From positions 8,494,001-8,558,000 of the forward strand of contig OZ176053.1 in NCBI GenBank assembly GCA_964247055.1: a stretch of 64,000 nt of DNA. The letters run 5' to 3'. This DNA comes from Paragordius varius (taxonomy: Eukaryota; Animalia; Nematomorpha). The position numbers and the translations under genes are program-made. The notes beneath the pieces were generated by a model. The model searched no databases. It saw only the letters and a program-made list of their open reading frames with translations, and had not been told where the DNA came from. Each line of letters begins with the position of its first letter. The first letter of the stretch is position 1. Below, piece by piece: positions 3,751-45,675 of this stretch.

Positions 3751-4199
3751 TTTAAAAAAACTTATTTCCATTATATCATATTAATATACATAATAAAATC
3801 CATTTACTCAACAAAGACGTAAAAATCACCATTAGATAAATAATTATAATGAAATATCAAACCAGACATCTAGCTAATATTGATATTTTAAATATGTATT
3901 TAAAATACATATTACAATATATGTTGTCGCCTAAATTTATAAATGTGATAAATCAGGGTTCAAACATCAATAAACTAATGTATCAGTATTTTTTAGATTA
4001 AATTTGTGGCAACACATAAGGATAATTAGGGAGTTAATAATTGTTGTCAAATTTAGAACATTCATAGTATCTTCAATATCTCATACGACAATCAAAATCG
4101 CTTATTGTCTATAAATTTTGAGATAAAATATAGTTTTTTTATCGAATTTTTTTAAAATTATAAAAAAATATATAAATAATTTACAATTTATTAAAGACC

Positions 4200-6126
4200 T
4201 TAATTCAAACCTAATAAATGAGTATTTACGTTTTGTAAAATTAAGGATAACAGAGATTTTAATTCCAAGTATGCGATGTAAAAATTATTTGAGTTTGTGT
4301 TGCTACTGAGAGAATTCACGCATTCCGGTAAAAGATACTGATAAGATACGAAATAATGGATAACGTAGACTCGAACAAAGCTGATGGTTTTGCATAATTC
4401 TTTGGCTGCAATATCAGAGTTTTTCTCACTTTTATCAACATACAATCTAAATTAACAAATAAACATATTTTATAACAAATTATAAATAAGGATTTTATTG
4501 AGATAAAAAGTCAAACTTTTCACAATTCATATGCTTTTTAATGATCCAATCTGTGGCATTTAAAATCCGAGCCCAATTGGTACAAATTTGATGAATGTAT
4601 TGCATCAAGGCATATTTTGTATGCACCAATGTTTTTTCATTACCTTTATTGGTTGTTGAAACGCTGGATTTCATATTTTTATTCCCGTCATCCATACTGC
4701 TGCTATTTATAGTAGATCCTAATATATTAGTTTCACTGAGCGTAGACTCTTGAAAATTATCAGGGATAATGGTTAAAGCTTCAGTGGCCGTTTCTATAGC
4801 AATCATATCCATTTGCCAAATCGATTGTGTTGATGGGTCCTAAAAGCAAACTTATATTTAATATTATGTTTTTCACAATAGTATAATGTATTATGTCCAT
4901 TAATAATATCAATCAACTCAATATTCTGATTTTTAACAGTTAAAATCCGGCTTTTTATAGGTAAATAATTTTTAACGGCGAGTTTAATTGGTTAAAGGGC
5001 ATTTGGCCAAAGATTAACTTTATTAGCATATGTAAATATTAAGGATACAAATATCAAATCAAATACAGTATAATTTTCAAAATACAATTCTGATTTAAAA
5101 TATCAGTATTTTAATTTTTAAATAATGAAAAGATATCATACTTTTTGACCGATCAAAAGTTAAAACCAATTACACTTATATTTAAAAAATTTAATCTCAT
5201 ATGTACAAAAACTCAGATAACATGCATTTCGGTTCTAAGGATTTAAATGTAATTTGCATTAACAATGCAAATCATGATTTTATTAGTACATCGAAAGCAA
5301 CATTAAAATACCGAATGATCGTAATTAATTTAATAAAACTAAGAAACTTGGCCTGACCTGAACCAAAATTATAAATCCCAATTAAAAAGAATAAAAAATA
5401 AAGGTTAATTTACAAAAAATCTGAAAACAGTTTGATTTCGAACCCAAATATAAAAGTAAACATAATTATGCAAAATATGTGCTTAATATGTAAAATTATC
5501 AATATATATAGATACCCAAAACTCATAATAAATGGGGATACCTTGCTTAAATCCGTCAAATTTTCTAAAATTAAACAATTAAATACCTTTTAATTTTTCA
5601 GTTAAAACTTTAATAGGAAATAGATCCTCAATAATTAACATAACGGTAAGTTTTTTGTGAAATAATTTATTGTACATCTCTTTTAAAATAAAATTATTTT
5701 GTTCAATTTCGGTTGCAGTTTTAACAGCATAAATGGATAATTCGGATTCGCGCTTCACGTTTTCAAGTTTAATATCCGCAATTTTATTAATAAATTTTTC
5801 ATAATTATCATGTAATGTTTGGACCAGCAAATACTTATTAGACTTTTCTTTCACCAGCTATATTTATGAAAACAAATACATCGAAAATTGCGTTTCGCAT
5901 GCTTTGTACTGGCACCCCCGTAACCAATCTTTCTGATACATCATGTAATTCTTGTTTGCTTTTATATATATTATATAAAAGACCCGAACTTTATGTTACG
6001 ATAATAAAACCTAGCTGGAGACACAATTAAATATTCGTTTTTGATGCAAACCTCGCACAAAAATTCCGATGATTTTTTACGGCAAAGAGGGCAAGTTGTT
6101 TGGGGTGCAGTTAACCCATAACTCAT
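4200..6126 (-). CDS. ATG14: ATG14/Barkor-like autophagy PI3K-complex subunit (multi-exon)
   Basis: ATG at 6126: MSYGLTAPQTTCPLCRKKSSEFLCEVCIKNEY resembles the ATG14 N-terminal CxxC..CxxC motif (human CPLCNTTRRRLTCAKCVQ). A coiled coil follows, then LIIEDLFPIKVL (cf. LTSVIFPIEEV) and ALMQYIHQICTNWARILNA..IKKHMNCEK (cf. [29 protein letters not shown]). Introns: two of 22 nt (5858-5879, 5565-5586) and 702 nt (4840-5541); first and ~4.45-4.52 kb introns ambiguous; a possible extra terminal exon ends at 3804. Confidence 0.65.
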
Positions 6127-13775: not shown

Positions 13776-15326
13776 CACTTTGATTCAAATTGGGGTATCC
13801 AAATACCCCAGACAATATTTAAGTTGATATTTATTAAAAACTACTGAAAGAAACCGTTTCAATTAAAATTATGCTTCTATCCCAGGGCCTCTTAAACTTT
13901 TGTGATTCCCGAACCGATTTTCTTAACGACCCCAACAATTATAAAAGAAAAATAAATTAATATTTAATGATATAATTAGGTAAAAATATACATACGCATA
14001 TGAAAATATATATATTTAGAATTCATTTAAAAACATATAAAAATCTAAAATTAAAATTTGTACGAAATTAGAAATGTCTTTATTATAATTTCAAAAACAA
14101 AACTAGATTCTGACCGTCTTAATTTTCTCAAATATGTGCATGTTTTTTATTGCATATCAAGTCCAATCTTGGTCCAATGTTTGAAACCCCTGGATGTAAG
14201 ACCTCTTCAACATTTTTTATCGCTGAACGATATTGGGATTTAATGTATTTAAAAGCTGAAAAAGTAACTTCACATAAATATGTGGTGTTAAATGGCAGAA
14301 GTACATTTAACGCCATATCGGCGATTGTGAGAAATTCAGTTCTAGTTCCGATCCAGAATTCAGTCGAGTCAGGAGTTTATTTTGGAATTAAAGTTTAAAG
14401 TTTGAGTCACACGAAAGCTCAGCAAATTTCTCTTGAGCTTTAAGTGGCAGAGATCAATCTCACTTAAGCCAATCCAAAACGGCTTTTGAAATATGTCCGG
14501 AACTGTATTTCTAGCGCTTTTAAGTGATCTACAATAGTTTTTCCAATAAAAGTTTTACAATAAATTTTCTCAATTACAAAATTGTCGACACTGGAAGAGA
14601 TTGGCAAATTTTTTTATAAATTTCTATAACATCTGATTAGTAAATTTATAAAAGATACTAAATGATCGGAATACTGGCATAAACAGTCTTTCCGCAGAAG
14701 ATTTTATGATATATTTATCTACGATGATTGATATTTTTCTTTATACCAATAATTTACTAGTTAAAAAAACTTATGTTAAACTGTATTTTTATCACTCTCG
14801 ACCCCATAATTTTGATACGCGATCCTAAATGGGGTCGCGACCCATAGTTTAAGAAGCCCTGTTCTATCCTAATAAAAATTATATAAATAAGCCGAAACCA
14901 AAAAAATTTAATTTTGAAAAAAAAGTTCCATATCAAACTAGTTCGTCGCCATTTTTATTTTGCGACAACTCTGCAAAATATCGTGTTTATTTAATTTTAA
15001 AGCCAAGACTAAAGCTAATTTTTATTTAAATCCCATCTAACATTAATAAAAACATAAAAAGTGGTTTATTTTGTATTATTTTAAGATTTAGCTAATCCAC
15101 ACTTGTCATGTTGACAAAATTTTTACCTTGCGGTTTTACCTTAAAATAAGTAGTATCAAGTATTTTTGACGAAACATTTTTGTATATTTGGTTTACAAAT
15201 GTTACATAAGTGCAAATTTTGTGGTTTTAATTTATTCAATATTTTTTGAATTATTTAATTTTAAATAGTCCTGGGGTATACAACTACCCGAATCGAAGGA
15301 CTGAAATGATGTATTGTTGCCAAGTG
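13776..15326. mobile_element. piggyBac-like MITE, tandem copy B, interrupted by a hAT element
   Basis: Starts at the TTAA shared with copy A (aagtgTTAAcactt) and ends CCAAGTG at 15326; removing the hAT insert plus one TSD leaves 564 bp, matching copy A. Confidence 0.7.
13883..14861 (-). mobile_element. Non-autonomous hAT (Buster/Charlie-like) element with transposase C-terminal remnant
   Basis: TIR CAGGGCCTCTTAAACT / AGTTTAAGAAGCCCTG (1 mismatch); perfect 8-bp TSD TTCTATCC (13875-13882, 14862-14869); minus frame EFWIGTRTEFLTIADMALNVLLPFNTTYLCEVTFSAFKYIKSQYR matches the hAT dimerisation domain. Confidence 0.9.
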
Positions 15327-15383
15327 ATTTATGCATGTGATTCGCATTTATTGTGGAATTCAAAACAGCGGATTATTTAAATT

Positions 15384-18300
15384 ATGAATTCTAACAATAG
15401 CTCTCTGTTTAATTTTGATACCTTAAATGCGTATACAGAAAATAATTTTTAGGTCAGATTACACATTAAATGCAGGAAATGCTATATCATCCAAAAAAGT
15501 TTTAAAATCACTGAATGATTATCAGAAAGTTTTAGTACATTTTAATATTGTAGGAGTTAAATAGATACGAGTTGGAAAATGTTGATTTGAAATACCAACT
15601 ATATGAGTTAAAAAAACAAGTAAAAGTTATATACATTGTTTAGAAAACTAATCGTAAGGAAGTAATAAACGATCTTCTGACACCCAAAAGTAGTGACTCA
15701 TTGTTATTCCGCAACCAACCTTCAAAAGTATAAATAATATTTAAAATAGGTATCATTCAAAAACTCTATTAGTGGAATATTTAATGACAACAATAATACA
15801 AATTTTTCTTCCCAGACAAACAGTATTTTTAATATTAAAGTTTTTAGATAATGTTTTACAAATCGATAATTTACGAATGATGTGGTCAGATTTTAATTTG
15901 AATGTCAGTTTTGACAATCCTTATCGGGTACAAGTTTTTGAGGAATATAAAAAACTCCAAATCGCTGCAAACAACATTAAAGAAATTATGAATAATTACA
16001 AAGGTATGGCTCCTCCGCTACCTAATTACAATGAAGAAGCTTTGGTTGAAAATATAAATACTTTAGCTATAGAAGAAGGTGGAGACTATTATAAAAACGA
16101 CGATGATTATTATTACAAGAAAGATGATGATCATCAATTTAATCCAATTATTAAGATGATAAATACAGAGACTCAAACTGAGACTACTGAAAATCTATTT
16201 GCGATTTCTCCAATCGCTAATGAAAAAAATAGCGATCACTTAACTACAATAAATAAGAGTCAGATGATTTCAAATGATAGCTTTGAAAATACCAATATTG
16301 AATCTCCCATTGATAATGGCAACGAAAATAATATAATTTACAAACAAAAAATTATATCACTTACCAATGTTTCGAGCAAACTATACAACCACTTAGTAAA
16401 ATTAATCCAATATTACCAACAATTGATGGCAGCTAATAAGACCCAATCTATCTCAATGAGTGAAGACTTAAGTTTCAATTTTGAAGAAACTTTTGCTAAT
16501 ATAACATCCGATATATTTTCTGGTTATAATAAAAATCTATCTAAAACAACCGATTTTAATAAAAATTCAATTGGTACGGATAATAATGAATCATCTGTAT
16601 TTGCGTCTGACATTTCTAATGATTTAGTTCAAGCCTCTAAAATAATTAGGGATAGCGTATCCTTTCTCCAAAACAGTGAAACGAAAAAGCTAAAAAACCT
16701 ATCCCTAAACCAATGTGAAAGCAATGATATAAATCAACCCCATGATTTAATAATAGCTGATTTAACAAATCATGAGACAAATGATAAAATTATGATAAAT
16801 AATAATGATTTGAATAGATATTTAATATCATTACAGCTTCTTGATGATAAATACGATCATTTTTTTGAGGCATGCCAGTCAAGCTTGCAAATGGACGATG
16901 AAAATTTGGATGTTTCTAAATTTTCAAATATATGTCAAGGAATCGAGTTTTTCCTGCAAGGTTGTATGGGAATCTATGCAGATTTAGAGGTATTATCCGT
17001 TGAATAATTAATTTTTGGATGAAAATGTATTAAAAAATATCAACGAGAAGAGAACATATTTTAATGAGCCCTTCTAATATCTAATTATTATTTTTATTAT
17101 TATGTTAAAATTGGTACTATATTATTGTTCTGGTTATTAGAGTCATACTATAGATTCGGATGAAGGACAAAATGTGTTCAACAAAATTAACTCCCAACTC
17201 TTGATTATCTTACGACAAAACTGTGAAGCTTTTAGAACAATTTTTAATGACTATAAATGGCCCTTCTTGCGCGGTAAGAAAAAATAATATATTTTCCATT
17301 TCTTAAAATGTAGTTTTTTATTACAAAATATAGCAACTATTGGATCTATTATATATACCATATTTCCAAAATTAAATAATTGAGAACCTAAATTAACGTT
17401 TCGCTATATATCCTTTTATAATTTTAAACCTTTGTTATCAAATATTTTTATTAAACCTTTTTGAAAACCTTTTACGACAATAAAGTATCTTGAAGGTGCG
17501 CATCCATTTATAAGTATTTTTGGGTTAAGGTGAAAATTCTGATCATCCAGATGAAATAAAGCGGGTAGGCATAACGTTTTTATATAATCATCTGAGTTAT
17601 AAAAGGCACCTTTTACGGGTGATTTTTAATATTTACGGATGGTAGGTTGGGAAACCGTTCGAGGTGAAAATTCTACTATTGCTTTCACAACTGTAGTTTG
17701 AAGGTTATTTTTAAATGTGTTCACCATTTGTATCAAAGGTGGGATATACAGCTTGGAATTTTCTCGATCCCCAAAACCATGTCGTGCCTAAATTTGTTGA
17801 TGGATGGTATAGACATATCTAATTTATCAACTGCTTCCGAGATGGATTCTAGGCGATTAGAAAATATCCTGCATGCCTTTTTTATTTTCTCTTCCGCCCT
17901 GAAATGAGAATTTTTATTATAAATTATATGCCTCTTTGACGTTGGCTAACTAGCATCTCATTAACAACCGTTTCATTTTTTACAGAATTATTCAATGTAA
18001 CCTAAAATTATAATTAAAAGTGACTAAAGGAGTCGTTTCATAATATTTGAAAACCACCAATTGTATTTTCGCAAATAACTAAATTAGATTCTTCCGAAAT
18101 TGAGTTTTTATCAAAATTGTAAGAGTTGAGAAATTATAAATATTTGGTTCTCGAGGAGGTGGTTCTTGATCTTAACCTTGTGTTATAGATAAATCTGGTA
18201 GATTTGGTGTTTAAGGTTAGCTAATTTCATTAATATCTATGTAGGAAATGAAACGAATGTTAATGAGATGACAGTTAACCAAGGTAAAAGATGTATTATA

Positions 18301-21300
18301 TTGTGTATAAGAAAGATTATAAATTATGGTCGGAAGAAAAAATAAACAAGGCATAAAGGATATATTCTATTCCTCTAGAAAATGAACCATCTTGAAAATT
18401 AGTAGATAAATTGCATATGTCTATATACCAATCAACAAATATAAGCGTGACTTAGTTTTGAGTAGTGAAAATCCGGAAGACAATATAAGTCAAACAAATA
18501 ACTATGAAACTACAGTTGGGGAAATAATACAGGGATTGCCATAATTTTAATTTTTCCCAACCTACTATCCGTAAAATATAAAAAGAATCAAAAATCACTC
18601 AAAAAGGTGCATTTTGGAATCTAAAGAGAAAAATCTCAAATGGTTATAAAAAAAGTTAAAAATGCCCGCTTCTAATCAGCCTCAACCACACGAGAAAACA
18701 ACCCAAAAATATTTAATGAAACGCCCCTTCAAGACAATTTCCTGCCGTAGAAGGTTTTTAAAACGGTTATACATGAAAAAGTATCGCTTCAATATATGAA
18801 TAGTTGAGGGAGTCGTTAACTTCGAAATCATTACGGGATACTTGGGGGGGGGGGGGCATTTAAATTTTTTTGGATGAAATTATACCGCTGTTGACCGAAG
18901 GATCATATATCATGTGCGATTGCGTTAACGCACTGATACATAAAGCTTGTTGCTTAAGGGGAAGGTTATTTTTTCTATCCCCTATTCCCACCAGCTAAAT
19001 CTAATCGGTTTAATATAATTAATATTAATATATTTGGTATCAAACTATAAATTATTTTTTATGATATAATAAAATAATATGCTGGACTAATTTAATTTAA
19101 TATCGCTGTAGCATTTGAGAGCTTAGAAAAAGAAAATGCATTACTCAACGATCAATTGCGGGAACTAAATGGGGATAATAAATCACTTCATGATTTACTA
19201 ACCACTTCGAATGATCGTTACACTGACCTCATACATCAAACTAATACTTTGAATACCACATCCAATTCAATTAATAAACGGGATTTGGAAAAACAGATTT
19301 ATGCTAATGCCCATGAAATTATTAACAAGTTTATTTTACATTGTTTTTCATATATGGTTGTTTTTCTCACAATCGATTTTTTTCGATGTAGTGAATACGC
19401 TTGTTAAATTATAGGCGGGCCACAAATGCGTGGGAAAATTTATAAACAACACTGAATTTTATTTTTTGTTCTATTATTTTATAAATAGGTTTTAACATTA
19501 TAACCGAGAATTTATAATTTTGAATAATTTTTGTACACGCTTGTGCCATTATTATTAAACTTATATTTTTATAACTGTAGATTTATTGATAAAGTTCAAA
19601 CGGCCGAACACAATTATGAAAATCGCTTTGAAAATTTGCAGTCAATTTTGCAAAAATACGGCTCATCTATCGGCTTCTGTTCACAAGAATTGGACCGTCT
19701 CAAAAATACATTTGAAACAAAACTTATCGAAATTATCTCAGAAAAACGAAAAGAACATGAATATTATACTCATTTGGAGCAAAATTTGAAATTCAAATAT
19801 CAAAAGTATGTCATAAATAATAGTTAAATTACAAATCTAATTTAAATTTTATAATTAGGGGTTATATATAATTTATATTTTGTTTTATATCGATAGCGTC
19901 AACAAATTAAATAAAACGCTCACACTAAAAAATCAAGCTTTAGAGAGGCATGTTGCTGAATTGCGAACTGAATGTGAAATGCAAAGTATAATCATTATAA
20001 GAATTATTTTAGATTTAGAAAAAAGCATAACAAAATCATCAGCTCATGATAACAACAAAAGTAATACCATTGATAATATTTCATTATCACTCCAACAAAT
20101 GACAATTGGTACTTTTTTATTTAATACAGTTAAAATTGAAATTATACGGACAAAATGTAACTATATGAAAACAATTATCTTTTCTAAAAGACAACCATAC
20201 TTTTAAATCTTTTCATAATTTTAAATATAACTGACTGTTTTAAATGAACAGTATAAAATAGAGATGTAAATTGGTAACACAATCCATTTTGTATTATATG
20301 ATTGTAATTAAATGATTTTTATAGGAAACTGTTAAAAAAAATCTTTATATTTTTGCGTTCCGTATAATTTCAATTTTTGGGAAAATAATTATATATTTAT
20401 AATTTAATGTTGTATTTAGAATCGAGTTCAAGCCTTTTAGAAGAAGAATTAAATGAGGTATTTAATGTTCTATTTCAGTTAAAAAACAAATCAATAAAAT
20501 CCTCATATATTTGGAAAACACAATAAATATAAAAGCTCACATTTTTTGCAGTTTTGACTTTTTACCAATAAAACATTAAAAGATTGATAGTGTTGCCTTA
20601 AGAACTAAAAAAATGCTGTTTTAAGTGAAAATGTTTTGTTTTAGATGAAAAAAGGTTTTATATATTATAAAACGGTATTTACATACGCATTATCAGCCAT
20701 ATTTTCATTACACTTTATATAATTTTTTATAATTATCTTATTATACATTATGTAATTTCATTTAGAATATTACCCGTGACCTAAGCCAATACACTATATC
20801 TTCGTCTACTCGCATAGAAAATATGAGCCTATTGAACCCTAAAAATTACATAGAAAAAGATGAATTTCTCATAGAACCAAAAGATTTGACCAAAAATATA
20901 TCTCATCAAAAAGACACCCCAATACAATCTTATACACCAAAAGACGATATAATTAACTCGTCAAAATCAATTAGAAGTAGTATAAAATCAAATTCAACTG
21001 ATAATATTTTACAGCATTCTGTAAAAAAGGATGCGGAAATTAACATAGAACCCAGGATAATTTTAAACAATAAAGGATTAAAAGGTAAAATCGTTCGTTT
21101 TTGAAATAATGTATGTATCACTTTACTATCATGGAAAGTTTAAAGATTTAATATCGTGGTAACATTTTTTTGCACACTTTGTTTAGATAAACGGAATATA
21201 ACTTGGCCACTAGGAAAGAAAACGCCTGAATTAATCCAATTTAAGCCAATACCTTGTATAACAAGTATATAATATTTTAAATCGGAAATGGTATTTAATT

Positions 21301-26636: not shown

Positions 26637-29600
26637 ATGTGCGAACAGAAAGATTTATGGGACCAAGATTTTGAAGAAGAAATTCCCGATGACGAACTTT
26701 TATCACAAAGCAATACTAGTTTCTCTTTTAGTAGAGATAACAAAAGGAGGCGGTAATTTATAAAATAATATAAGATTTTATTCCTATCAAGAGATGATGG
26801 ATAAAATTTTATCACTTCAAAAAGAAAATAAAACCTTATATGATTCATTGCAATATTTTAAGTTGGAATTAAGAAATTCAGAGAAAAAAGAGAATGAACG
26901 TTTTGTACATTGGCAAAAGAGTATGTTAGAAGTTAAAGAAAAATATGAAAACAAAATCAATGAATTAACAGTAATTGTATTTACATTTTAGAATGCTAAT
27001 GCACAAAATGTTAACAATAACGCGGGCATACAGACTAATGAAGATGATTATTTATTTGTGCTAAAATTAACTCCTCCATTGATTACGTTAGCCAATTTGG
27101 AAAATATTAAGTTTTATGATTTATATTATGGACTAGATTTTTTCCCAATGATATAATTAATGAAAGTCAGGCCTATTTTAAGCAACTCACGTTAACGAAA
27201 CAATCAATTTTGAATAATTTTCAACAAATAAATTATCATCTCATTCGTCTTATTGATTGTCATTTAATATATTTTATAAATTTCATTTACATGGACCTTT
27301 ATGTAGCCAAACAACCACATGAGCAATCTTCATTTATAGATTGGTGGTATAATAACGCTTCTCTTCCATTAGGTATAGCTGTAAATATTTTTGCCAAAAA
27401 TGCTTATTTTATCTTTTGCCAAATGAATATATTATCTAGATTTTTAATAAATATGATTAAAAACACTCTTTATACTATTTTTAAATTTAAATTATGATAA
27501 TATGAGGAAAATCCCAAATGTCTAGCTTCATGCATATCAATGTGCGCCTTTATTATCTGTTTATGTATGGATTAGACGAACCGTTGGAAGATATTGAAAA
27601 ACTTGGGGCTATCATTAAAGAAACTGATTTCTTGAATCGTTACATGAAAATTTTAAACGCATTTCATGAAATACTAACCATATTAGCCACTCACGAAAGA
27701 GATAAATTAAAACAATTCTCTATCCCTATTATTTATCCTTCCATTTTTAACATTCAACCATCAACTCTAGAGAATAGTGACAACGACGTACAGATTGATG
27801 TTAACAAAGAATTAAATTACATACGGTTCGTACATAGAACCTTAAATTTATTAAAAGTGAATTATTTATTTCTAGCATAAGTTTTATCAACAGTAGCGTG
27901 AGATGCATATGGGAATATAATATAAAAGGTGCATAAAATTTAATTAAATTATTTTTATGATTTTCACTACTAGATGTAAGAATGCCACAGGGATTAATGG
28001 TGAAACACAAATTCCTACCAACAAAACTTTTACAAGGCTAGTACTTATACTGTATATTTGTTCCGAAGTGAAAGTAATATCGTTTCATACGCTCTAAGAA
28101 TTTTTTAAAATACTTTTATTTCTAAAATATTTTTTATAAATTGGAAGTTTTAATGTATTAAATAGACACATTTTTAATTTTAAAATATCATTTAGGAAAA
28201 AAGTTTGTCCATACATCACTTTCTCTTCCCATTAACCCTAAACATCCTCAATTTATTTTGGTACTCTGACGAAAGACCATGTGAGCTTAAAGTTTCTATC
28301 AAACATTTATCAACCATATTTCTGTATGGCGTTGAAAAAAATCCGATATATTATCCACAAATAATGGAATTTTTATGCAATCTCGTCGATTACAAATACC
28401 CATTTATAGGGGCACAATGTAAGAAATTCAATAAGGATAACACGCTTGCAACATTACTAGATAAATCTTGGCACAAAAGTTAGTTGTGGATAATTTGTTG
28501 TAATTATATAACTTTTATAAAAAATACTGATTACATTATGTGAATTTAAACGAAATCTGTTTGCATTATAGCTTTGTTTAATATTATGCGTGTAGGTATA
28601 TCAAAGTCTGAACTACACATTTGTTATTAGTATTTTCAGCGTTAATAAAATAGATTAGGGTTTTTATCTACTAATAAATCTAAATCAATAATCTTTAAAA
28701 AGAGATTATGCTACATGTTTTTATTGAAATTTCTATCTCATTTCTATTTTAGAACACAAGGAGACATGCTTTATGCGTCAATTTTTTGACAAAACATCAA
28801 AGGCATTCATGAGTCCTCCGACCAAGAAAGAAGAAATAATTTCTAAAGATCCCGAAAAAATGATTTATAAAATTGCTTTTGTAAGTTTTTTTTGTTTATG
28901 TATGTTCAATTTAAAGCTCATGAGAATATATTATAGGAGTTATAGTCACCAAATTTTGACAAGCCGAATAAAATGATTTTTTGTCTCAAGGGCCACAATA
29001 TAGCATTGACATGTATGTCATAGTTTTATATGCAGATACTTTAAACTAAATCAGTACATTAAATTTTTTTACGGGCTATACACATTTTTCGACAAATCTG
29101 ATCAACGTAACAATGCCAAAACGTCATATCCTTATGTGTATTAACATATTTCATTTTTAAATATACCGTTTCTATTATTTATTTATTTATTTGGCACATC
29201 TTGCCAAAACAATATGCCTTTATCTTTTGTGATTTATATAACTTCTCTGGAATTATTATGAATCGGAAAATTTTTTAACAGGATAAGCATATGTTTCGAA
29301 AAAAAGCAGGAAATAATTTTCAAAAATAAAATTTTATGATTGAGAAATTACCGGATCGAACGGAATTTCTAAATGTGACACAGGACTTCGGAATAGGCAC
29401 CCTGTTTTAAATGAACAGGGCTATTTTTTTTATATTTACGAAATACATATTATTTTTTTAAAAAAATAGTCACTCAATTTTTTGATTGCCTTGGCACGCG
29501 AAAATGTCTTACCACAATTATTTACCCGTGATTGTGTATATCAGTGCAATTTTAAAGTAAAATATTTGGATTTTTTTCATTTTGATCTAAGACAATAATT

Positions 29601-42737: not shown

Positions 42738-43954
42738 ATGAATAAGATGAATTTTATTTGGCTTGTTTTGCCGATCATTGGGATCTTTAGGTTTATATCG
42801 AATCAATGCATCGATATTTCCTCCGATATATCAAAAGTACTATTTTTATTTATGTAGGTGTCATTAAAAATATATGATGTTAAATGGATTCCATTAAACC
42901 AAAGTAATCAGTATATATTTTGCGTAAATATTGATGCTGATACTACCCTGCGGTTTAAATTGGATATGACTTTATTCATTCTTGATGCCACAATGCCCAA
43001 TATTATCTCTTTAAAATATATGAACGAATTTACCAACATAGTGAACTCATCGTTGTCAGTAAAAAAGCATTCTCAATTGCTTTTAGACGATAATTTAGTA
43101 ATCTCATACACCTTTCACCCTGAAGTCCTGGATTCAATACATTTTATTGATGAAATCAATCGAATTGTTTGTGATATTATATTTTTTTACATAAAAAATA
43201 TTTTAAATTACTCAGAATCAATGTCACTCATTGATACTGATACCAACCAAATCGCATCTTTGATTGAAGATAATAATGGATTTTATAGCAACTCTCTCAA
43301 CGAAAATTTTTTACCGCTACGTAATCTAACCACTCGACAACAACCATTGATAAACTTTTCGCTTCAACATGATCCGATCCATTACCAGATTGATAGACGC
43401 ACACAAGTTTTAAGACCTGTGTACGATCCTTCACAAGCTACATTGGATGAAAAAATCACCAACAATTACAATGCAATAAATCCGTCAAAAATTAAGGAAT
43501 TAAGCAGTAATTTTGCCATAAATTTAACTGATGGTATCATGCCTCCTTCTTTACGGAAACCCATAGATCAAATTGATGTGAAAGTTGATAAAGTCTTTAG
43601 ATACCATATACCAGAGGACATTTTTTATGATTATACGGACGGGTATACACCTAACCTACGTTTAGCTCTTTTCACCATAGATAAACAGCCAATTGAGAGT
43701 AGCTATAGGTTTATATATATATATATATATATATATTAAATATTAGCGTATGACTTACCATTGTTTATCTAACTTTTTTATTTCTGCCATAAATGTATGT
43801 GACTAATAATTTGATTATATTGGCTCTATTTTTAAAATCAATAATTTTTTTAACATAATTTTTTTTGATTAAATTTTATATTAAATTTAAATGTAAAAGT
43901 ATTAAATTGTCAATTTGACTCTGACTTTTAACCATATTCTTTCTTTATTAATGA

Positions 43955-43995
<41 letters not shown>

Positions 43996-45675
43996 AGATA
44001 CAATTGGTTACGTTATGATCCCCTTACTCAAAGTTTGTATGGTATACCTCGAAAGAGTGATGTTGGTTTACATGAATTAATATTGGCGGCATATAATAAG
44101 TATGGGAAGGCTGTGTACAATGCATTTACCATTTTGGTCATGAGTCGACCCAAAAATTTTAGATCCCTTAGCGATAAAGGAATAAATCATCGGTTTTGGA
44201 CCGATATTGAATTTAAAAGCGCCAGCAATGAACCTAAAATAGCTAATTTAACTGCGCGACACTCTGATCGCGAAGGAAAGTTTGTCAATAGTATGCCAAA
44301 ACAAGTTGCATTTTTTGAACGTCTTCACAAATATTTCCAGGATCCGGACAGCAGAGCGGTCCAAATGAAAAATTTTACTGGCAGACAACAACCAACCCCA
44401 ACTATTTTGGATGGAATACTCGTGGATGCTATTGAAATGGGTCATTCTGTACGGATCAGTTGGGTGAATGATACACTTTTGAGTCCAAATCATTTACCAC
44501 TCGAAACGTATGCCAAATACTTTGAGGATAATAATAATTTTGTCAATGAATCATCCTCGACAATGGTGGACCCTGATGATACTACCAATAAAAATCTCTT
44601 GAACGTTTGTCCTCGCGAAGAAATTGATCAATTAGCCATTAAACTACTACATGATGACCAAAATTTGCCGAATAAACGATTTAGCAAAGCCCTATCTACC
44701 AATGAGTATCGTGTCAAAGGTGCCGGATATGATTTATATCATGCTTGTGCGACTGGAGAAGACAAAGGTACCTACCTGCCAGGAAAAAAGAAAAAATTGT
44801 GGACCCGACCTGTGTTGAGCCCAAAGTATGGGAAAAATCTATGGCTCACAACTATACTCCCGGCCATTGTTATGGCCATGCTTTTATTGTTGGCTGGGAT
44901 CATAGCTTGTTGCTTATACCGGTAATTAAATTAATGATATTTTTTTGGTGTTTAAAAATTATCTCCTACGCATCTGTTCTCTTTCTTGAAAACATTTTTT
45001 TTCATAGACTTTATAGGTCAAATTTATTTGTTAAGTAGCTAATTTTGTGTTATAGATACAATACTTGGGCTAGTAAGACATTATTTTTAGTGAAATATGG
45101 ATAGATTTTATGTTTTTTATTTCCATTTCCTATATTTTTGTCCTATCTCTTCTCTTTTATTAAATTGTGTGTTAGGCATTTAAATCATTGTTGATTTCAT
45201 AAAATGTGAGTTTTAAACGGTTAAAATTCTGATGCCATATTAAAAATATTTTTTTCTCCTTGTGATATGATCAAACATTATCACGAATCTCATATATTAT
45301 AAATATATATATATATATATATATATTAGACGAACTCATAAACCCCGATTCACAAGCTATGAAGATAAGGCATTATTTCGAAAAGGAGTACCCGTGGTCA
45401 TATACCCCCAAGAATTTGAACAAAACTTTTTACCTTCTACACCGCTAAACAGTGTTAATAAATCGCTTCTTGGTAATCAATCTCCCGAAATTATATATCA
45501 GGATGGTAGTTTTAATAAGAATTCTCCACCACCTCCCCCCTTTCATTCTACCATAACATCTCCACTCCTAATAGATGAAAGTAATGTATTAACAGGGACA
45601 CAACATCGACAAAATATGGCAAACTCCAACAATGGACGAAATAACATTGTTTCAATATCTCACAGCGGTAGATAG
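42738..45675 (+). CDS. DAG1: Dystroglycan (divergent)
   Basis: Signal-peptide exon 42738-42836 (MNKMNFIWLVLPIIGIF), 21-nt intron, then exons 42858-43708, 43998-44921 and 45330-45675. Cadherin-like domain PPSLRKPIDQIDVKVDKVFRYHIPEDIFYD..NWLRYDPLTQSLYGIP; SEA-like MGHSVRISWVNDTL; CPREEIDQL..FSKAL; TM TILPAIVMAMLLLLAGIIACCLY; cytoplasmic RRTHKPRFTSYEDKALFRKGVPVV (cf. DQATFIKKGVPII). Confidence 0.9.
43958..43991. repeat. (AT)n microsatellite at an intron 3' end
   Basis: Directly precedes the gttag acceptor at 43997; similar tracts at 43711-43735, 45303-45326, 32426-32461, 63613-63651 and 3064-3082. Confidence 0.9.

Follow-up and report, generated by a model that had tools for sequence, protein, structure and literature searches.

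The candidate gene at 15384-17007

The 64-kb stretch of DNA analysed here (the window) holds a candidate gene of six exons at 15384-17007, in which successive exons are separated by GT..AG segments of 22, 25, 24, 22 and 25 nt. An earlier reading of the letters (the sequence-only reading) had proposed these as a run of micro-introns, and we found all five exactly where it had placed them. The features of the model, all on the + strand, are as follows.

15384..15430, +, exon 1: 47 nt, beginning with the ATG at 15384; frame open to the donor, with the best codon score in the inferred frame
15431..15452, +, micro-intron 1: 22 nt, GT..AG, phase 2, interior 11% GC
15453..15528, +, exon 2: 76 nt, placed by frame and codon score
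15529..15553, +, micro-intron 2: 25 nt, GT..AG, phase 0
15554..15619, +, exon 3: 66 nt, encoding a heptad-like coiled-coil peptide; site of the supposed CM1 core
15620..15643, +, micro-intron 3: 24 nt, GT..AG, phase 0
15644..15727, +, exon 4: 84 nt, placed by frame and codon score
15728..15749, +, micro-intron 4: 22 nt, GT..AG, phase 0, interior 0% GC
15750..15822, +, exon 5: 73 nt, the weakest of the exons by codon score
15823..15847, +, micro-intron 5: 25 nt, GT..AG, phase 1
15848..17007, +, exon 6: 385 codons, ORF ending at 17004, stop codon at 17005-17007

As had been predicted, removing the five segments regains a single frame: exons 1-5 sum to 346 nt (47+76+66+84+73), so that the ATG at 15384 and the 385-codon ORF share one frame, and retaining the segments breaks it. 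A stop codon sits one codon 5' of this ATG. Micro-intron 3 is a multiple of 3 in length, yet in-frame read-through meets a stop after 7 codons, namely the TAG of its own acceptor. For micro-intron 2, there is an alternative in-frame acceptor 3 nt downstream (TAG/GAG). Exon 6 has a possible donor at 16990, which would matter if the gene runs on into the coiled-coil ORFs at 19.1-21.1 kb, and it holds an in-frame ATG at about 15877. Hence, a gene model that dispenses with exons 1-5 is possible.

The gene is single-copy in the genome. For exon 6, we found no homologue by word-index search, no usable match in the ESM Atlas and no paralogue in its own genome; an exhaustive HMMER search returned only a spurious tandem-repeat protein (P0001). 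The CM1 motif that the sequence-only reading had recognised, and with it membership of the centrosomin/CDK5RAP2 family, was not borne out: exons 2, 3 and 4 searched singly had no Pfam match at E up to 10 and no PDB match, and when the whole genome was searched in six frames, Cnn_1N (PF07989) matched weakly at five other places and not at this locus. This negative is weak, because the exons were searched one by one.

Probable short introns in the window and elsewhere in the genome

Seven other segments of the window had been assigned to the same class.

5565..5586, -, micro-intron: 22 nt, phase 1; 90 and 50 open codons on its flanks
5858..5879, -, micro-intron: 22 nt, phase 0; 37 and 92 open codons on its flanks
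19986..20012, +, micro-intron: 27 nt, phase 1; within the coiled-coil ORFs 3' of the target gene; 42 and 63 open codons on its flanks
26753..26774, +, micro-intron: 22 nt, phase 2; 38 and 71 open codons on its flanks
26971..26991, +, micro-intron: 21 nt, phase 0; 69 and 54 open codons on its flanks
27111..27136, +, micro-intron: 26 nt, phase 2; 39 and 119 open codons on its flanks
42837..42857, +, micro-intron: 21 nt, phase 0; 55 and 293 open codons on its flanks

The last of these lies between a signal-peptide-like first exon and dystroglycan-like ORFs, with a DAG1 Pfam match in the next ORF (43915-44922). All seven run from GT to AG with 37-293 open codons on each side, and to this extent the window-wide class stood. 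However, window-wide ORF-joining scans gave no excess of GT-AG over control dinucleotide pairs in any of three designs, namely simple joins, joins of a "tight" kind, and paths found by dynamic programming across the full set of 256 dinucleotide pairs. Hence, the window-wide class rests on other evidence. Chance joins dominated all three designs; only a test specific to the target locus is informative. The window has 27% GC, joinable ORFs of at least 20 codons are common in it, and it is gene-sparse, its 148 longest ORFs matching only the Sushi and DAG1 Pfam families. The description of the segments as nearly pure A/T was accurate, since their interiors contain 0-18% GC.

Outside the window, we located short introns by homology in conserved genes; the target gene lacks homologues that could anchor its junctions in this way. 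In PRP8, a 29-nt GT..AG segment separates human residues 396-469 from 471-574, and a 26-nt GT..AG segment separates residues 728-766 from the directly consecutive 767-796. We restricted the PRP8 count to Pfam- or PDB-anchored junctions, because an unanchored dynamic-programming model added spurious exons and misplaced some junctions. The 14 Pfam-anchored introns measure 23, 26, 29, 257, ~370, 102, 26, 35, 118, 26, 27, 28, 32 and 84 nt; eight are thus 23-32 nt and the others 35-370 nt, five of the 14 being 84-370 nt. By reading, PRP8 has about nineteen short introns; they occur in runs and are not restricted to the 5' end of the gene. RPL3 has a 26-nt segment between the adjoining Pfam positions 2-170 and 172-291, and reading gave eight introns of 24-29 nt.

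Long introns are present in the same genome, as the sequence-only reading had held, both in PRP8 (84-370 nt) and in GAPDH-like genes, where adjoining Pfam coordinates are 2.3-4.2 kb apart. Intron-less retrocopies, which would be a DNA-level sign of splicing, were not seen for RPL3, PRP8 or GAPDH. That the DNA comes from an animal is supported by the dystroglycan and Sushi matches and by a near-human PRP8 (pieces 71/74 and ~97/104 identical to human). We rejected an origin from a dicyemid or a ciliate in view of these animal proteins, the standard genetic code, the long introns and the hairworm-type mitochondrial DNA. The largest RPL3 exon had no protein match above 85% identity in look-ups that leave out records of its own genome.

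We collected 36 micro-introns (five from the target gene, seven from the window and 24 from PRP8 and RPL3), all of which start with GT and end with AG. They measure 21-32 nt, most often 22 or 26 nt. For the signal statistics, we excluded two hand-derived coordinates that were 1 nt off. The class begins with GTA or GTT, preceded by an exon-final A or G; its interior has ~10% GC; and a T-rich stretch of 3-5 nt stands immediately before the AG, with T enriched at -3 to -5. TTAAT is found in 14 of the 36 micro-introns, where 9.7 would be expected (p = 0.07); yUnAy shows no enrichment. As had been described, no significant branch-point motif and no long pyrimidine tract is visible.

The splicing machinery looks ordinary. 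We found U1 (ACTTACCTG), U2 (GTAGTA) and U6 (ACAGAGA) snRNAs with canonical recognition sequences, and the genome encodes a conventional-looking SF1 and U2AF65-like gene. Hence, the specially adapted spliceosome that had been suggested for this lineage is unsupported. A search of the genome for U12 snRNA gave no match, which is not proof of absence.

Alternative readings of the five segments

We compared the locus in runs X1, X2, X3 and X5, all DNA contigs. The contigs of X1, X2 and X3 (three runs, two samples) contain all five segments; the X1 contig does not differ from the window across them, and micro-intron 1 is unchanged in all three runs. Words of the locus were absent from runs X6-X10 (marked "RNA?"). 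X3 is a second individual with a divergent allele, carrying 21 substitutions in 1.3 kb and exactly two indels across the gene: a 4-nt deletion at 15536, which shortens segment 2 to 21 nt, and an in-frame 3-nt deletion at 16106 in exon 6. The 4-nt deletion is harmless only if segment 2 is untranslated. All GT and AG ends are kept in the X3 allele, including those of micro-intron 5, where it has a T>G polymorphism at 15842, and an A/T polymorphism at 15737 in micro-intron 4 also leaves the splice dinucleotides unaffected. Farther on, the ORF that follows the micro-intron at 19986..20012 carries an in-frame insertion of ATA at 20050 in X3.

It is unlikely that the five segments are a chance chain of ORFs, with the gene starting at about 15877 or at a distant upstream exon and some or all of exons 1-5 being leader or intergenic DNA. 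Such a reading draws on the control dinucleotide pairs, which join as many ORFs window-wide as GT-AG does in this 27% GC sequence, and on the lack of a homologue for exons 1-5. The locus itself gave another result. We extended exon 6 upstream, allowing up to five introns (18-30 nt each) and requiring every exon to have 15 codons or more, and found that GT-AG yields 131 codons, compared with 48 ± 9 (maximum 99) for 63 frequency-matched dinucleotide pairs, ranking 1/64 and ~9 SD above these controls. The chain also ends on an ATG with a stop codon just before it. A codon-usage score trained on other genes gave exons 1-5 +0.15 bits/codon in the inferred frame, and -0.45 and -0.65 in the other two; this frame scored best in four of the five small exons, exon 5 being ambiguous in that the inferred frame did no better there than one other. 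Moreover, GC falls to 9% in the interiors of exactly these segments, compared with 29% in exons 1-5 (Fisher, 3e-5), and the segments share their size and end signals with the homology-anchored introns of PRP8 and RPL3.

A decaying pseudogene or non-coding locus, in which the frame breaks would be real mutations of a dead gene and nothing is spliced, is very unlikely. The gene is an orphan, and the X3 differences in exons 3-6 (7 synonymous and 12 non-synonymous, of which exon 6 has 6 and 10) suggest weak constraint. Against this, an open frame of 385 codons is not expected by chance in DNA of 27% GC, in which a random codon is a stop in ~8.5% of cases; instead of scattered lesions, the frame is broken by five A/T-rich blocks of 22-25 nt, each with GT and AG at its ends; and the exon 6 indel is in frame. 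Still less credible, to the point of being almost negligible, is that the segments are removed from the DNA, as in ciliate-like programmed elimination of IESs, or are assembly or sequencing artefacts. Paramecium IESs have a similar size mode, and the sequence-only reading had itself raised assembly indels as a possible refutation. However, the contigs of three runs cross all five segments and show them to be real DNA, no DNA contig examined joins their flanks directly, and their ends are GT..AG, not TA..TA.

We consider that the five segments are very probably genuine U2-type GT-AG introns of a single-copy, lineage-specific coiled-coil gene, belonging to a discrete genome-wide class of ~21-32 nt.

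If these are introns, the conventional U1/U2/U6 machinery may recognise each one by intron definition, as a single unit spanning the intron; it would use minimal signals only and draw the branch adenosine from the A-rich interior. Members of the 21-32-nt class would then follow one another in runs, among ordinary introns ranging from ~70 nt to several kb.

Comparison with other very short introns

In animals, introns shorter than about 30 nt were long regarded as annotation errors. Among animals, the literature that we searched places introns of <30 nt in dicyemids and myxobolid myxozoans only, and a survey of 51 animal genomes (September 2026) found such introns only in myxobolid myxozoans and Dicyema, which are extremely reduced parasites (PMC13644364). 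In myxobolids and Dicyema japonicum, whose genomes are compact and fast-evolving, the short class makes up the bulk of introns, with a median of 22-27 bp (Hadjez et al., Mol Biol Evol 2026, PMC13644364). Like theirs, the introns described here are ~20-30 nt long, with signals cut to about GTa...AG, interiors that are weak and A-rich, and nothing like a true pyrimidine tract, alongside a conserved branch-site-binding sequence in U2 and a conserved U2AF. Unlike theirs, the class here is non-dominant, occurs in the same genes as introns from 70 nt up to several kb and lies in a non-compact genome with slow-evolving proteins (PRP8 pieces 96% and 93% identical to human) from a different lineage, probably Nematomorpha.

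Flatworm microintrons (Opisthorchis felineus and other Neodermata) form a sharp peak at 37 bp and a second at 90 bp, with kb-scale introns alongside; they are clustered in runs, often 5' in genes, have lost the pyrimidine tract and are proposed to be spliced by intron definition (PMC6530080). Here too, a sharp short peak stands beside long introns, with five consecutive short introns 5' in the target gene and runs in PRP8. However, the peak here is at ~22-29 nt and thus below 30 nt, the runs in PRP8 reach beyond the 5' end, and the mitochondrial palindromes and GC content point to Nematomorpha rather than Platyhelminthes. Introns of Paramecium are about 25 nt long and those of the Bigelowiella nucleomorph 18-21 nt. 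Stentor introns are 15-16 nt (cited in PMC13644364). The present class resembles these in size, AT-richness and GT..AG ends, whereas they belong to unicellular lineages or relict nuclei in which essentially all introns are tiny. It differs from ciliates also in that the standard genetic code is used (385 codons without in-frame TAA or TAG) and animal proteins are encoded.

Judged from the genomic sequence, spliceosomal introns of <30 nt have probably arisen in animals a third time, independently, here in a non-compact and not fast-evolving ecdysozoan (hairworm-like) genome, where a discrete 21-32-nt class would be spliced beside introns of hundreds to thousands of bases in the same pre-mRNAs. 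If so, one otherwise conventional metazoan spliceosome would have two co-existing modes of intron recognition, and tiny introns would be uncoupled from genome reduction, given that the proteins evolve slowly, the snRNAs are ordinary and long introns are numerous. The genome would also be a tractable one in which to study how U1 and U2 work on introns that are smaller than the two footprints combined. Standard gene-prediction programs that require introns of at least 30-40 nt will break most genes of this genome (RPL3 has eight introns of this kind, PRP8 ~nineteen). The mitochondrial DNA has long palindromes of the hairworm type and the GC content is hairworm-like, so that the animal is probably a hairworm.

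The target gene and its five probable micro-introns

The micro-introns of this genome have GT..AG ends and minimal end signals, form a discrete length class, and occur alongside long introns and a conventional snRNA set. At the target gene, a coiled-coil gene in a window whose GC content is 24-34% along its whole length, we found that an ATG at 15384 (+), with a stop one codon upstream, opens a frame that is broken five times inside 464 nt. The sequence-only reading had explained the breaks by five segments of 22, 25, 24, 22 and 25 nt, and their coordinates and GT..AG ends are as it claimed.

Probable micro-introns of the target gene
15431-15452, +, micro-intron 1, 22 nt, GT..AG, phase 2
15529-15553, +, micro-intron 2, 25 nt, GT..AG, phase 0
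15620-15643, +, micro-intron 3, 24 nt, GT..AG, phase 0
15728-15749, +, micro-intron 4, 22 nt, GT..AG, phase 0
15823-15847, +, micro-intron 5, 25 nt, GT..AG, phase 1

Since exons 1-5 (47, 76, 66, 84 and 73 nt) total 346 nt, exon 6 (15848 onward) is in frame with an ORF of 385 codons that ends at 17004. The seven further segments proposed across the window also have GT..AG ends in their places, with 37-293 open codons on each side; the 5565 and 5858 segments lie on the minus strand. At micro-intron 2 there is a tandem acceptor, TAG|GAG (15550-15556), and splicing at the second, in-frame acceptor, 3 nt downstream of the first, would remove one glutamate. Judging from the sequence, a candidate donor at 16990 may possibly link exon 6, across about 2.1 kb, to the coiled-coil ORFs of 19.1-21.1 kb.

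Chance was weighed as a source of such joins. A window-wide count of GT..AG pairs joining open frames gave no excess over control dinucleotide pairs, because frames of at least 20 codons are very common at this composition. Removal of the segments does restore one frame, as had been asserted, joining ATG 15384 to the 385-codon ORF, but restoration of a frame is therefore weak evidence by itself here. At the locus, we extended the exon 6 frame upstream, allowing up to five introns of 18-30 nt and requiring 15 or more codons per exon, using 63 other pairs from dinucleotides of similar frequency as controls, and found that GT-AG extends 131 codons, compared with 48 ± 9 for the controls (maximum 99, AG-AG), ranking 1 of 64. 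The segment interiors have 9% GC vs 29% for exons 1-5 (Fisher p = 3e-5). With a codon log-odds table trained on PRP8, RPL3 and dystroglycan only (target gene excluded), exons 1-5 score +0.15 bits per codon when read in the inferred frame, against -0.45 and -0.65 in the others, and exon 6 scores +0.23; the inferred frame is highest in four of the five small exons, exon 5 being ambiguous.

No RNA run was found for the locus; the four runs that cover it best (X1, X2, X3 and X5) all consist of DNA contigs; X1 and X2 share one sample, possibly the source of the assembly, and X3 is a second sample from the same study. Contigs of X1, X2 and X3 cross all five segments uninterrupted, X1 with zero differences from the window over 15302-16183, so the proposed introns are real DNA and not assembly indels. 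No contig of the DNA runs joins the flanks of any of the five segments; hence, there is no sign that they are cut out of the DNA. In X3, the contig (15359-16661) represents a diverged allele that differs by 21 substitutions and just two indels: 4 nt are deleted at 15536, within segment 2, and 3 nt at 16106, within exon 6. The former would be tolerable only in untranslated sequence and the latter preserves the frame, while substitutions at 15737 (segment 4) and 15842 (segment 5) leave GT and AG intact. Downstream, an ORF of X3 gains an in-frame ATA at 20050, and the 1-nt indels of X3 at 18961, 19834, 19877 and 20708 are all outside ORFs. The exonic differences between the alleles (7 synonymous, 12 non-synonymous) fit a coding sequence under weak constraint. 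Run X5, which leaves 15399-15796 uncovered, comes from another study under another species label and covers much of 15200-21150 at 3-7x, mostly at 95-99% identity; its DNA comes either from this species or a sibling, labelled differently, or from a parasite in a sampled host.

The target gene is single copy, with no paralogue found in the genome. The spliced model was searched exon by exon, the joined sequence serving only for frame, composition and codon arithmetic. Exon 6 had zero homologues by word-index search and no usable match in the ESM Atlas, and exhaustive HMMER searching of 1.84 billion representatives yielded one protein, P0001, rejected as a homologue because its match is a 23-residue piece that aligns over 20 times to a 55-residue tandem repeat. 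The CM1 motif that had been read here would fall in exon 3, preceded by exon 2; searched singly, these exons gave no Pfam or PDB chain match, and Pfam Cnn_1N, run against all six frames of the genome, gave five weak matches elsewhere and zero at the target locus. By eye, exon 3 resembles the CM1 core, which is a lead and not a test.

Micro-introns and long introns elsewhere in the genome

The assembly has 110.6 Mb in 44 contigs, the window being C4:8494001-8558000. In PRP8 on contig C5, we found a 29-nt GT..AG segment (C5:4192983-4193011) between pieces matching residues 396-469 and 471-574 of human PRP8 (residue 470 being the codon it splits), and a 26-nt segment (C5:4194638-4194663) between residues 728-766 and 767-796. 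Comparison of all 37 exon ORFs with Pfam gave 14 junctions where neighbouring ORFs bear adjoining domain positions.

PRP8 introns anchored by Pfam domains
PRO8NT: 23, 26 nt
PROCN: 29, 257, about 370, 102, 26 nt
RRM_4: 35 nt
U5 site 2: 118 nt
U6 domain: 26, 27 nt
Domain IV: 28, 32 nt
PROCT: 84 nt

These 14 introns comprise eight of 23-32 nt, one of 35 nt and five of 84-370 nt; an unanchored count by reading gives about 36 introns in the whole gene, about 19 of them 23-33 nt and in runs. In RPL3 (C5:4327368-4328760), Pfam positions 2-170 and 172-291 adjoin across a 26-nt segment, and by reading there are eight introns (28, 24, 24, 26, 29, 26, 26 and 24 nt). The RPL3 start codon alone forms exon 1, with the 28-nt intron directly after the ATG (C5:4327368-4327398, locus L014).

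Two GAPDH-like loci (C3:1021921-1026547 and C9:637656-642956) have overlapping or successive Pfam coordinates separated by about 4.2 kb, and by 2.3 and 2.6 kb, which bears out the claim of kb-scale introns in the same genome, here in housekeeping genes; no intron-less GAPDH retrocopy was seen. Sushi-domain exons in the window (minus strand) are spread over at least 9 kb. Hence, with the micro-introns of PRP8 and RPL3, the longer introns of PRP8, the kb-scale gaps of the GAPDH-like genes and the spread of the Sushi exons, very short and very long introns coexist.

Splice signals and the spliceosome

The signal statistics rest on 36 micro-introns of 21-32 nt, of which the window contributes 12, RPL3 8 and PRP8 16. 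After GT comes A (22 introns) or T (14), and the exon before the intron mostly ends in A (17) or G (16). At position -3, 28 introns have T and 6 have A, and T stands at -4 in 22 and at -5 in 28. Interior GC averages 10%, TTAAT occurs in 14/36 vs 9.7 expected from shuffles (p = 0.07), and yUnAy and T runs are not enriched among the 36. The earlier description, almost pure A/T without a branch-point or pyrimidine consensus, therefore holds, except that a 3-5-nt T-rich patch precedes AG.

A spliceosome adapted to ultra-short introns had also been proposed, and we found no sign of remodelling: U1 (17 matches, best 124 bits, ACTTACCTG at the 5' end), U2 (46 matches, best 178 bits, with GTAGTA), U6 (2 matches at 114 bits, with ACAGAGA), SF1 (helix-hairpin domain, 74.9 bits) and a multi-exon U2AF65-like gene on contig C8 are all present. 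U12 had no match in the genome, which does not itself prove absence. The snRNA genes are clustered, with most of the 46 U2 matches, many degenerate, within about 270 kb (C3:257000-528000) and 13 of the 17 U1 matches within about 70 kb (C6:565000-633000).

The micro-introns would be recognised across the intron, with U1 pairing only with GTA or GTT and the last exon bases, the 3' end presumably read from the short T patch and AG, and the A-rich interior supplying a putative branch adenosine 5-15 nt upstream. In human short introns with truncated pyrimidine tracts, SPF45 replaces U2AF; by analogy, a comparable substitution in this genome is a possibility.

Related cases and the identity of the genome

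Among 51 animal genomes, introns below 30 bp were reported only in myxobolid myxozoans and Dicyema (PMC13644364, September 2026), in a text that makes no mention of nematomorphs. Like ours, those short introns have splice signals reduced to GTa..AG and occur where U2 and U2AF are conserved, and the myxozoan spliceosome was likewise concluded to be not remodelled; however, the present micro-introns sit in a genome with many long introns. Nearest in architecture are flatworm microintrons, a sharp 37 bp peak beside 3-kb introns, clustered, 5'-biased and without a pyrimidine tract (PMC6530080), although ours are shorter. Hairworm genome papers, in their accessible parts, do not discuss introns. 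The present case is a further lineage having an already known kind of feature; new here are the allele polymorphism at the locus, the negative result for naive ORF statistics, the Pfam-anchored PRP8 intron length series, and the snRNA and splicing factor check.

The genome is that of an animal, as had been stated, with dystroglycan, Sushi domains and PRP8 pieces that share 96% and 93% identity with the human protein. Slow-evolving proteins, long introns and the standard genetic code make a dicyemid, myxozoan or ciliate origin unlikely. The GC content points to Nematomorpha, the published Gordionus genome having 26.9% GC; however, all four published hairworm assemblies are 200-300 Mb, larger than the assembly here, which speaks against identity with a published species. 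The dystroglycan-like ORF opens with YIYIYIYIYI, apparently an in-frame TA-rich simple repeat (43906-44000), and the true exon probably begins downstream of it. At 20120-20300 lies a very high-copy repeat, with an X1 contig depth of 243,000 vs about 350 (an approximately 1000-fold rise) and, in each of the four runs, dozens of alternative joints and loose ends. The ORF at 20013-20203, after the 27-nt intron, runs into this repeat, so that the 3' part of the ORF probably derives from a transposon and is not exon.

Mitochondrial COX1 is of invertebrate type with TGA codons. The mitochondrial contig C44 has perfect or near-perfect palindromes without spacer, their arms 131 nt and 97 nt long, and, just upstream of COX1, a tandem array of 49-52-nt hairpins 72 nt apart, resembling the hairpin-rich mitochondrial DNA described as a trait of Nematomorpha (PMC6649704).

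Palindromes and hairpin array of contig C44 (locus L016)
L016:53-314, 773-1472 and 4064-4257, palindromes and hairpin array
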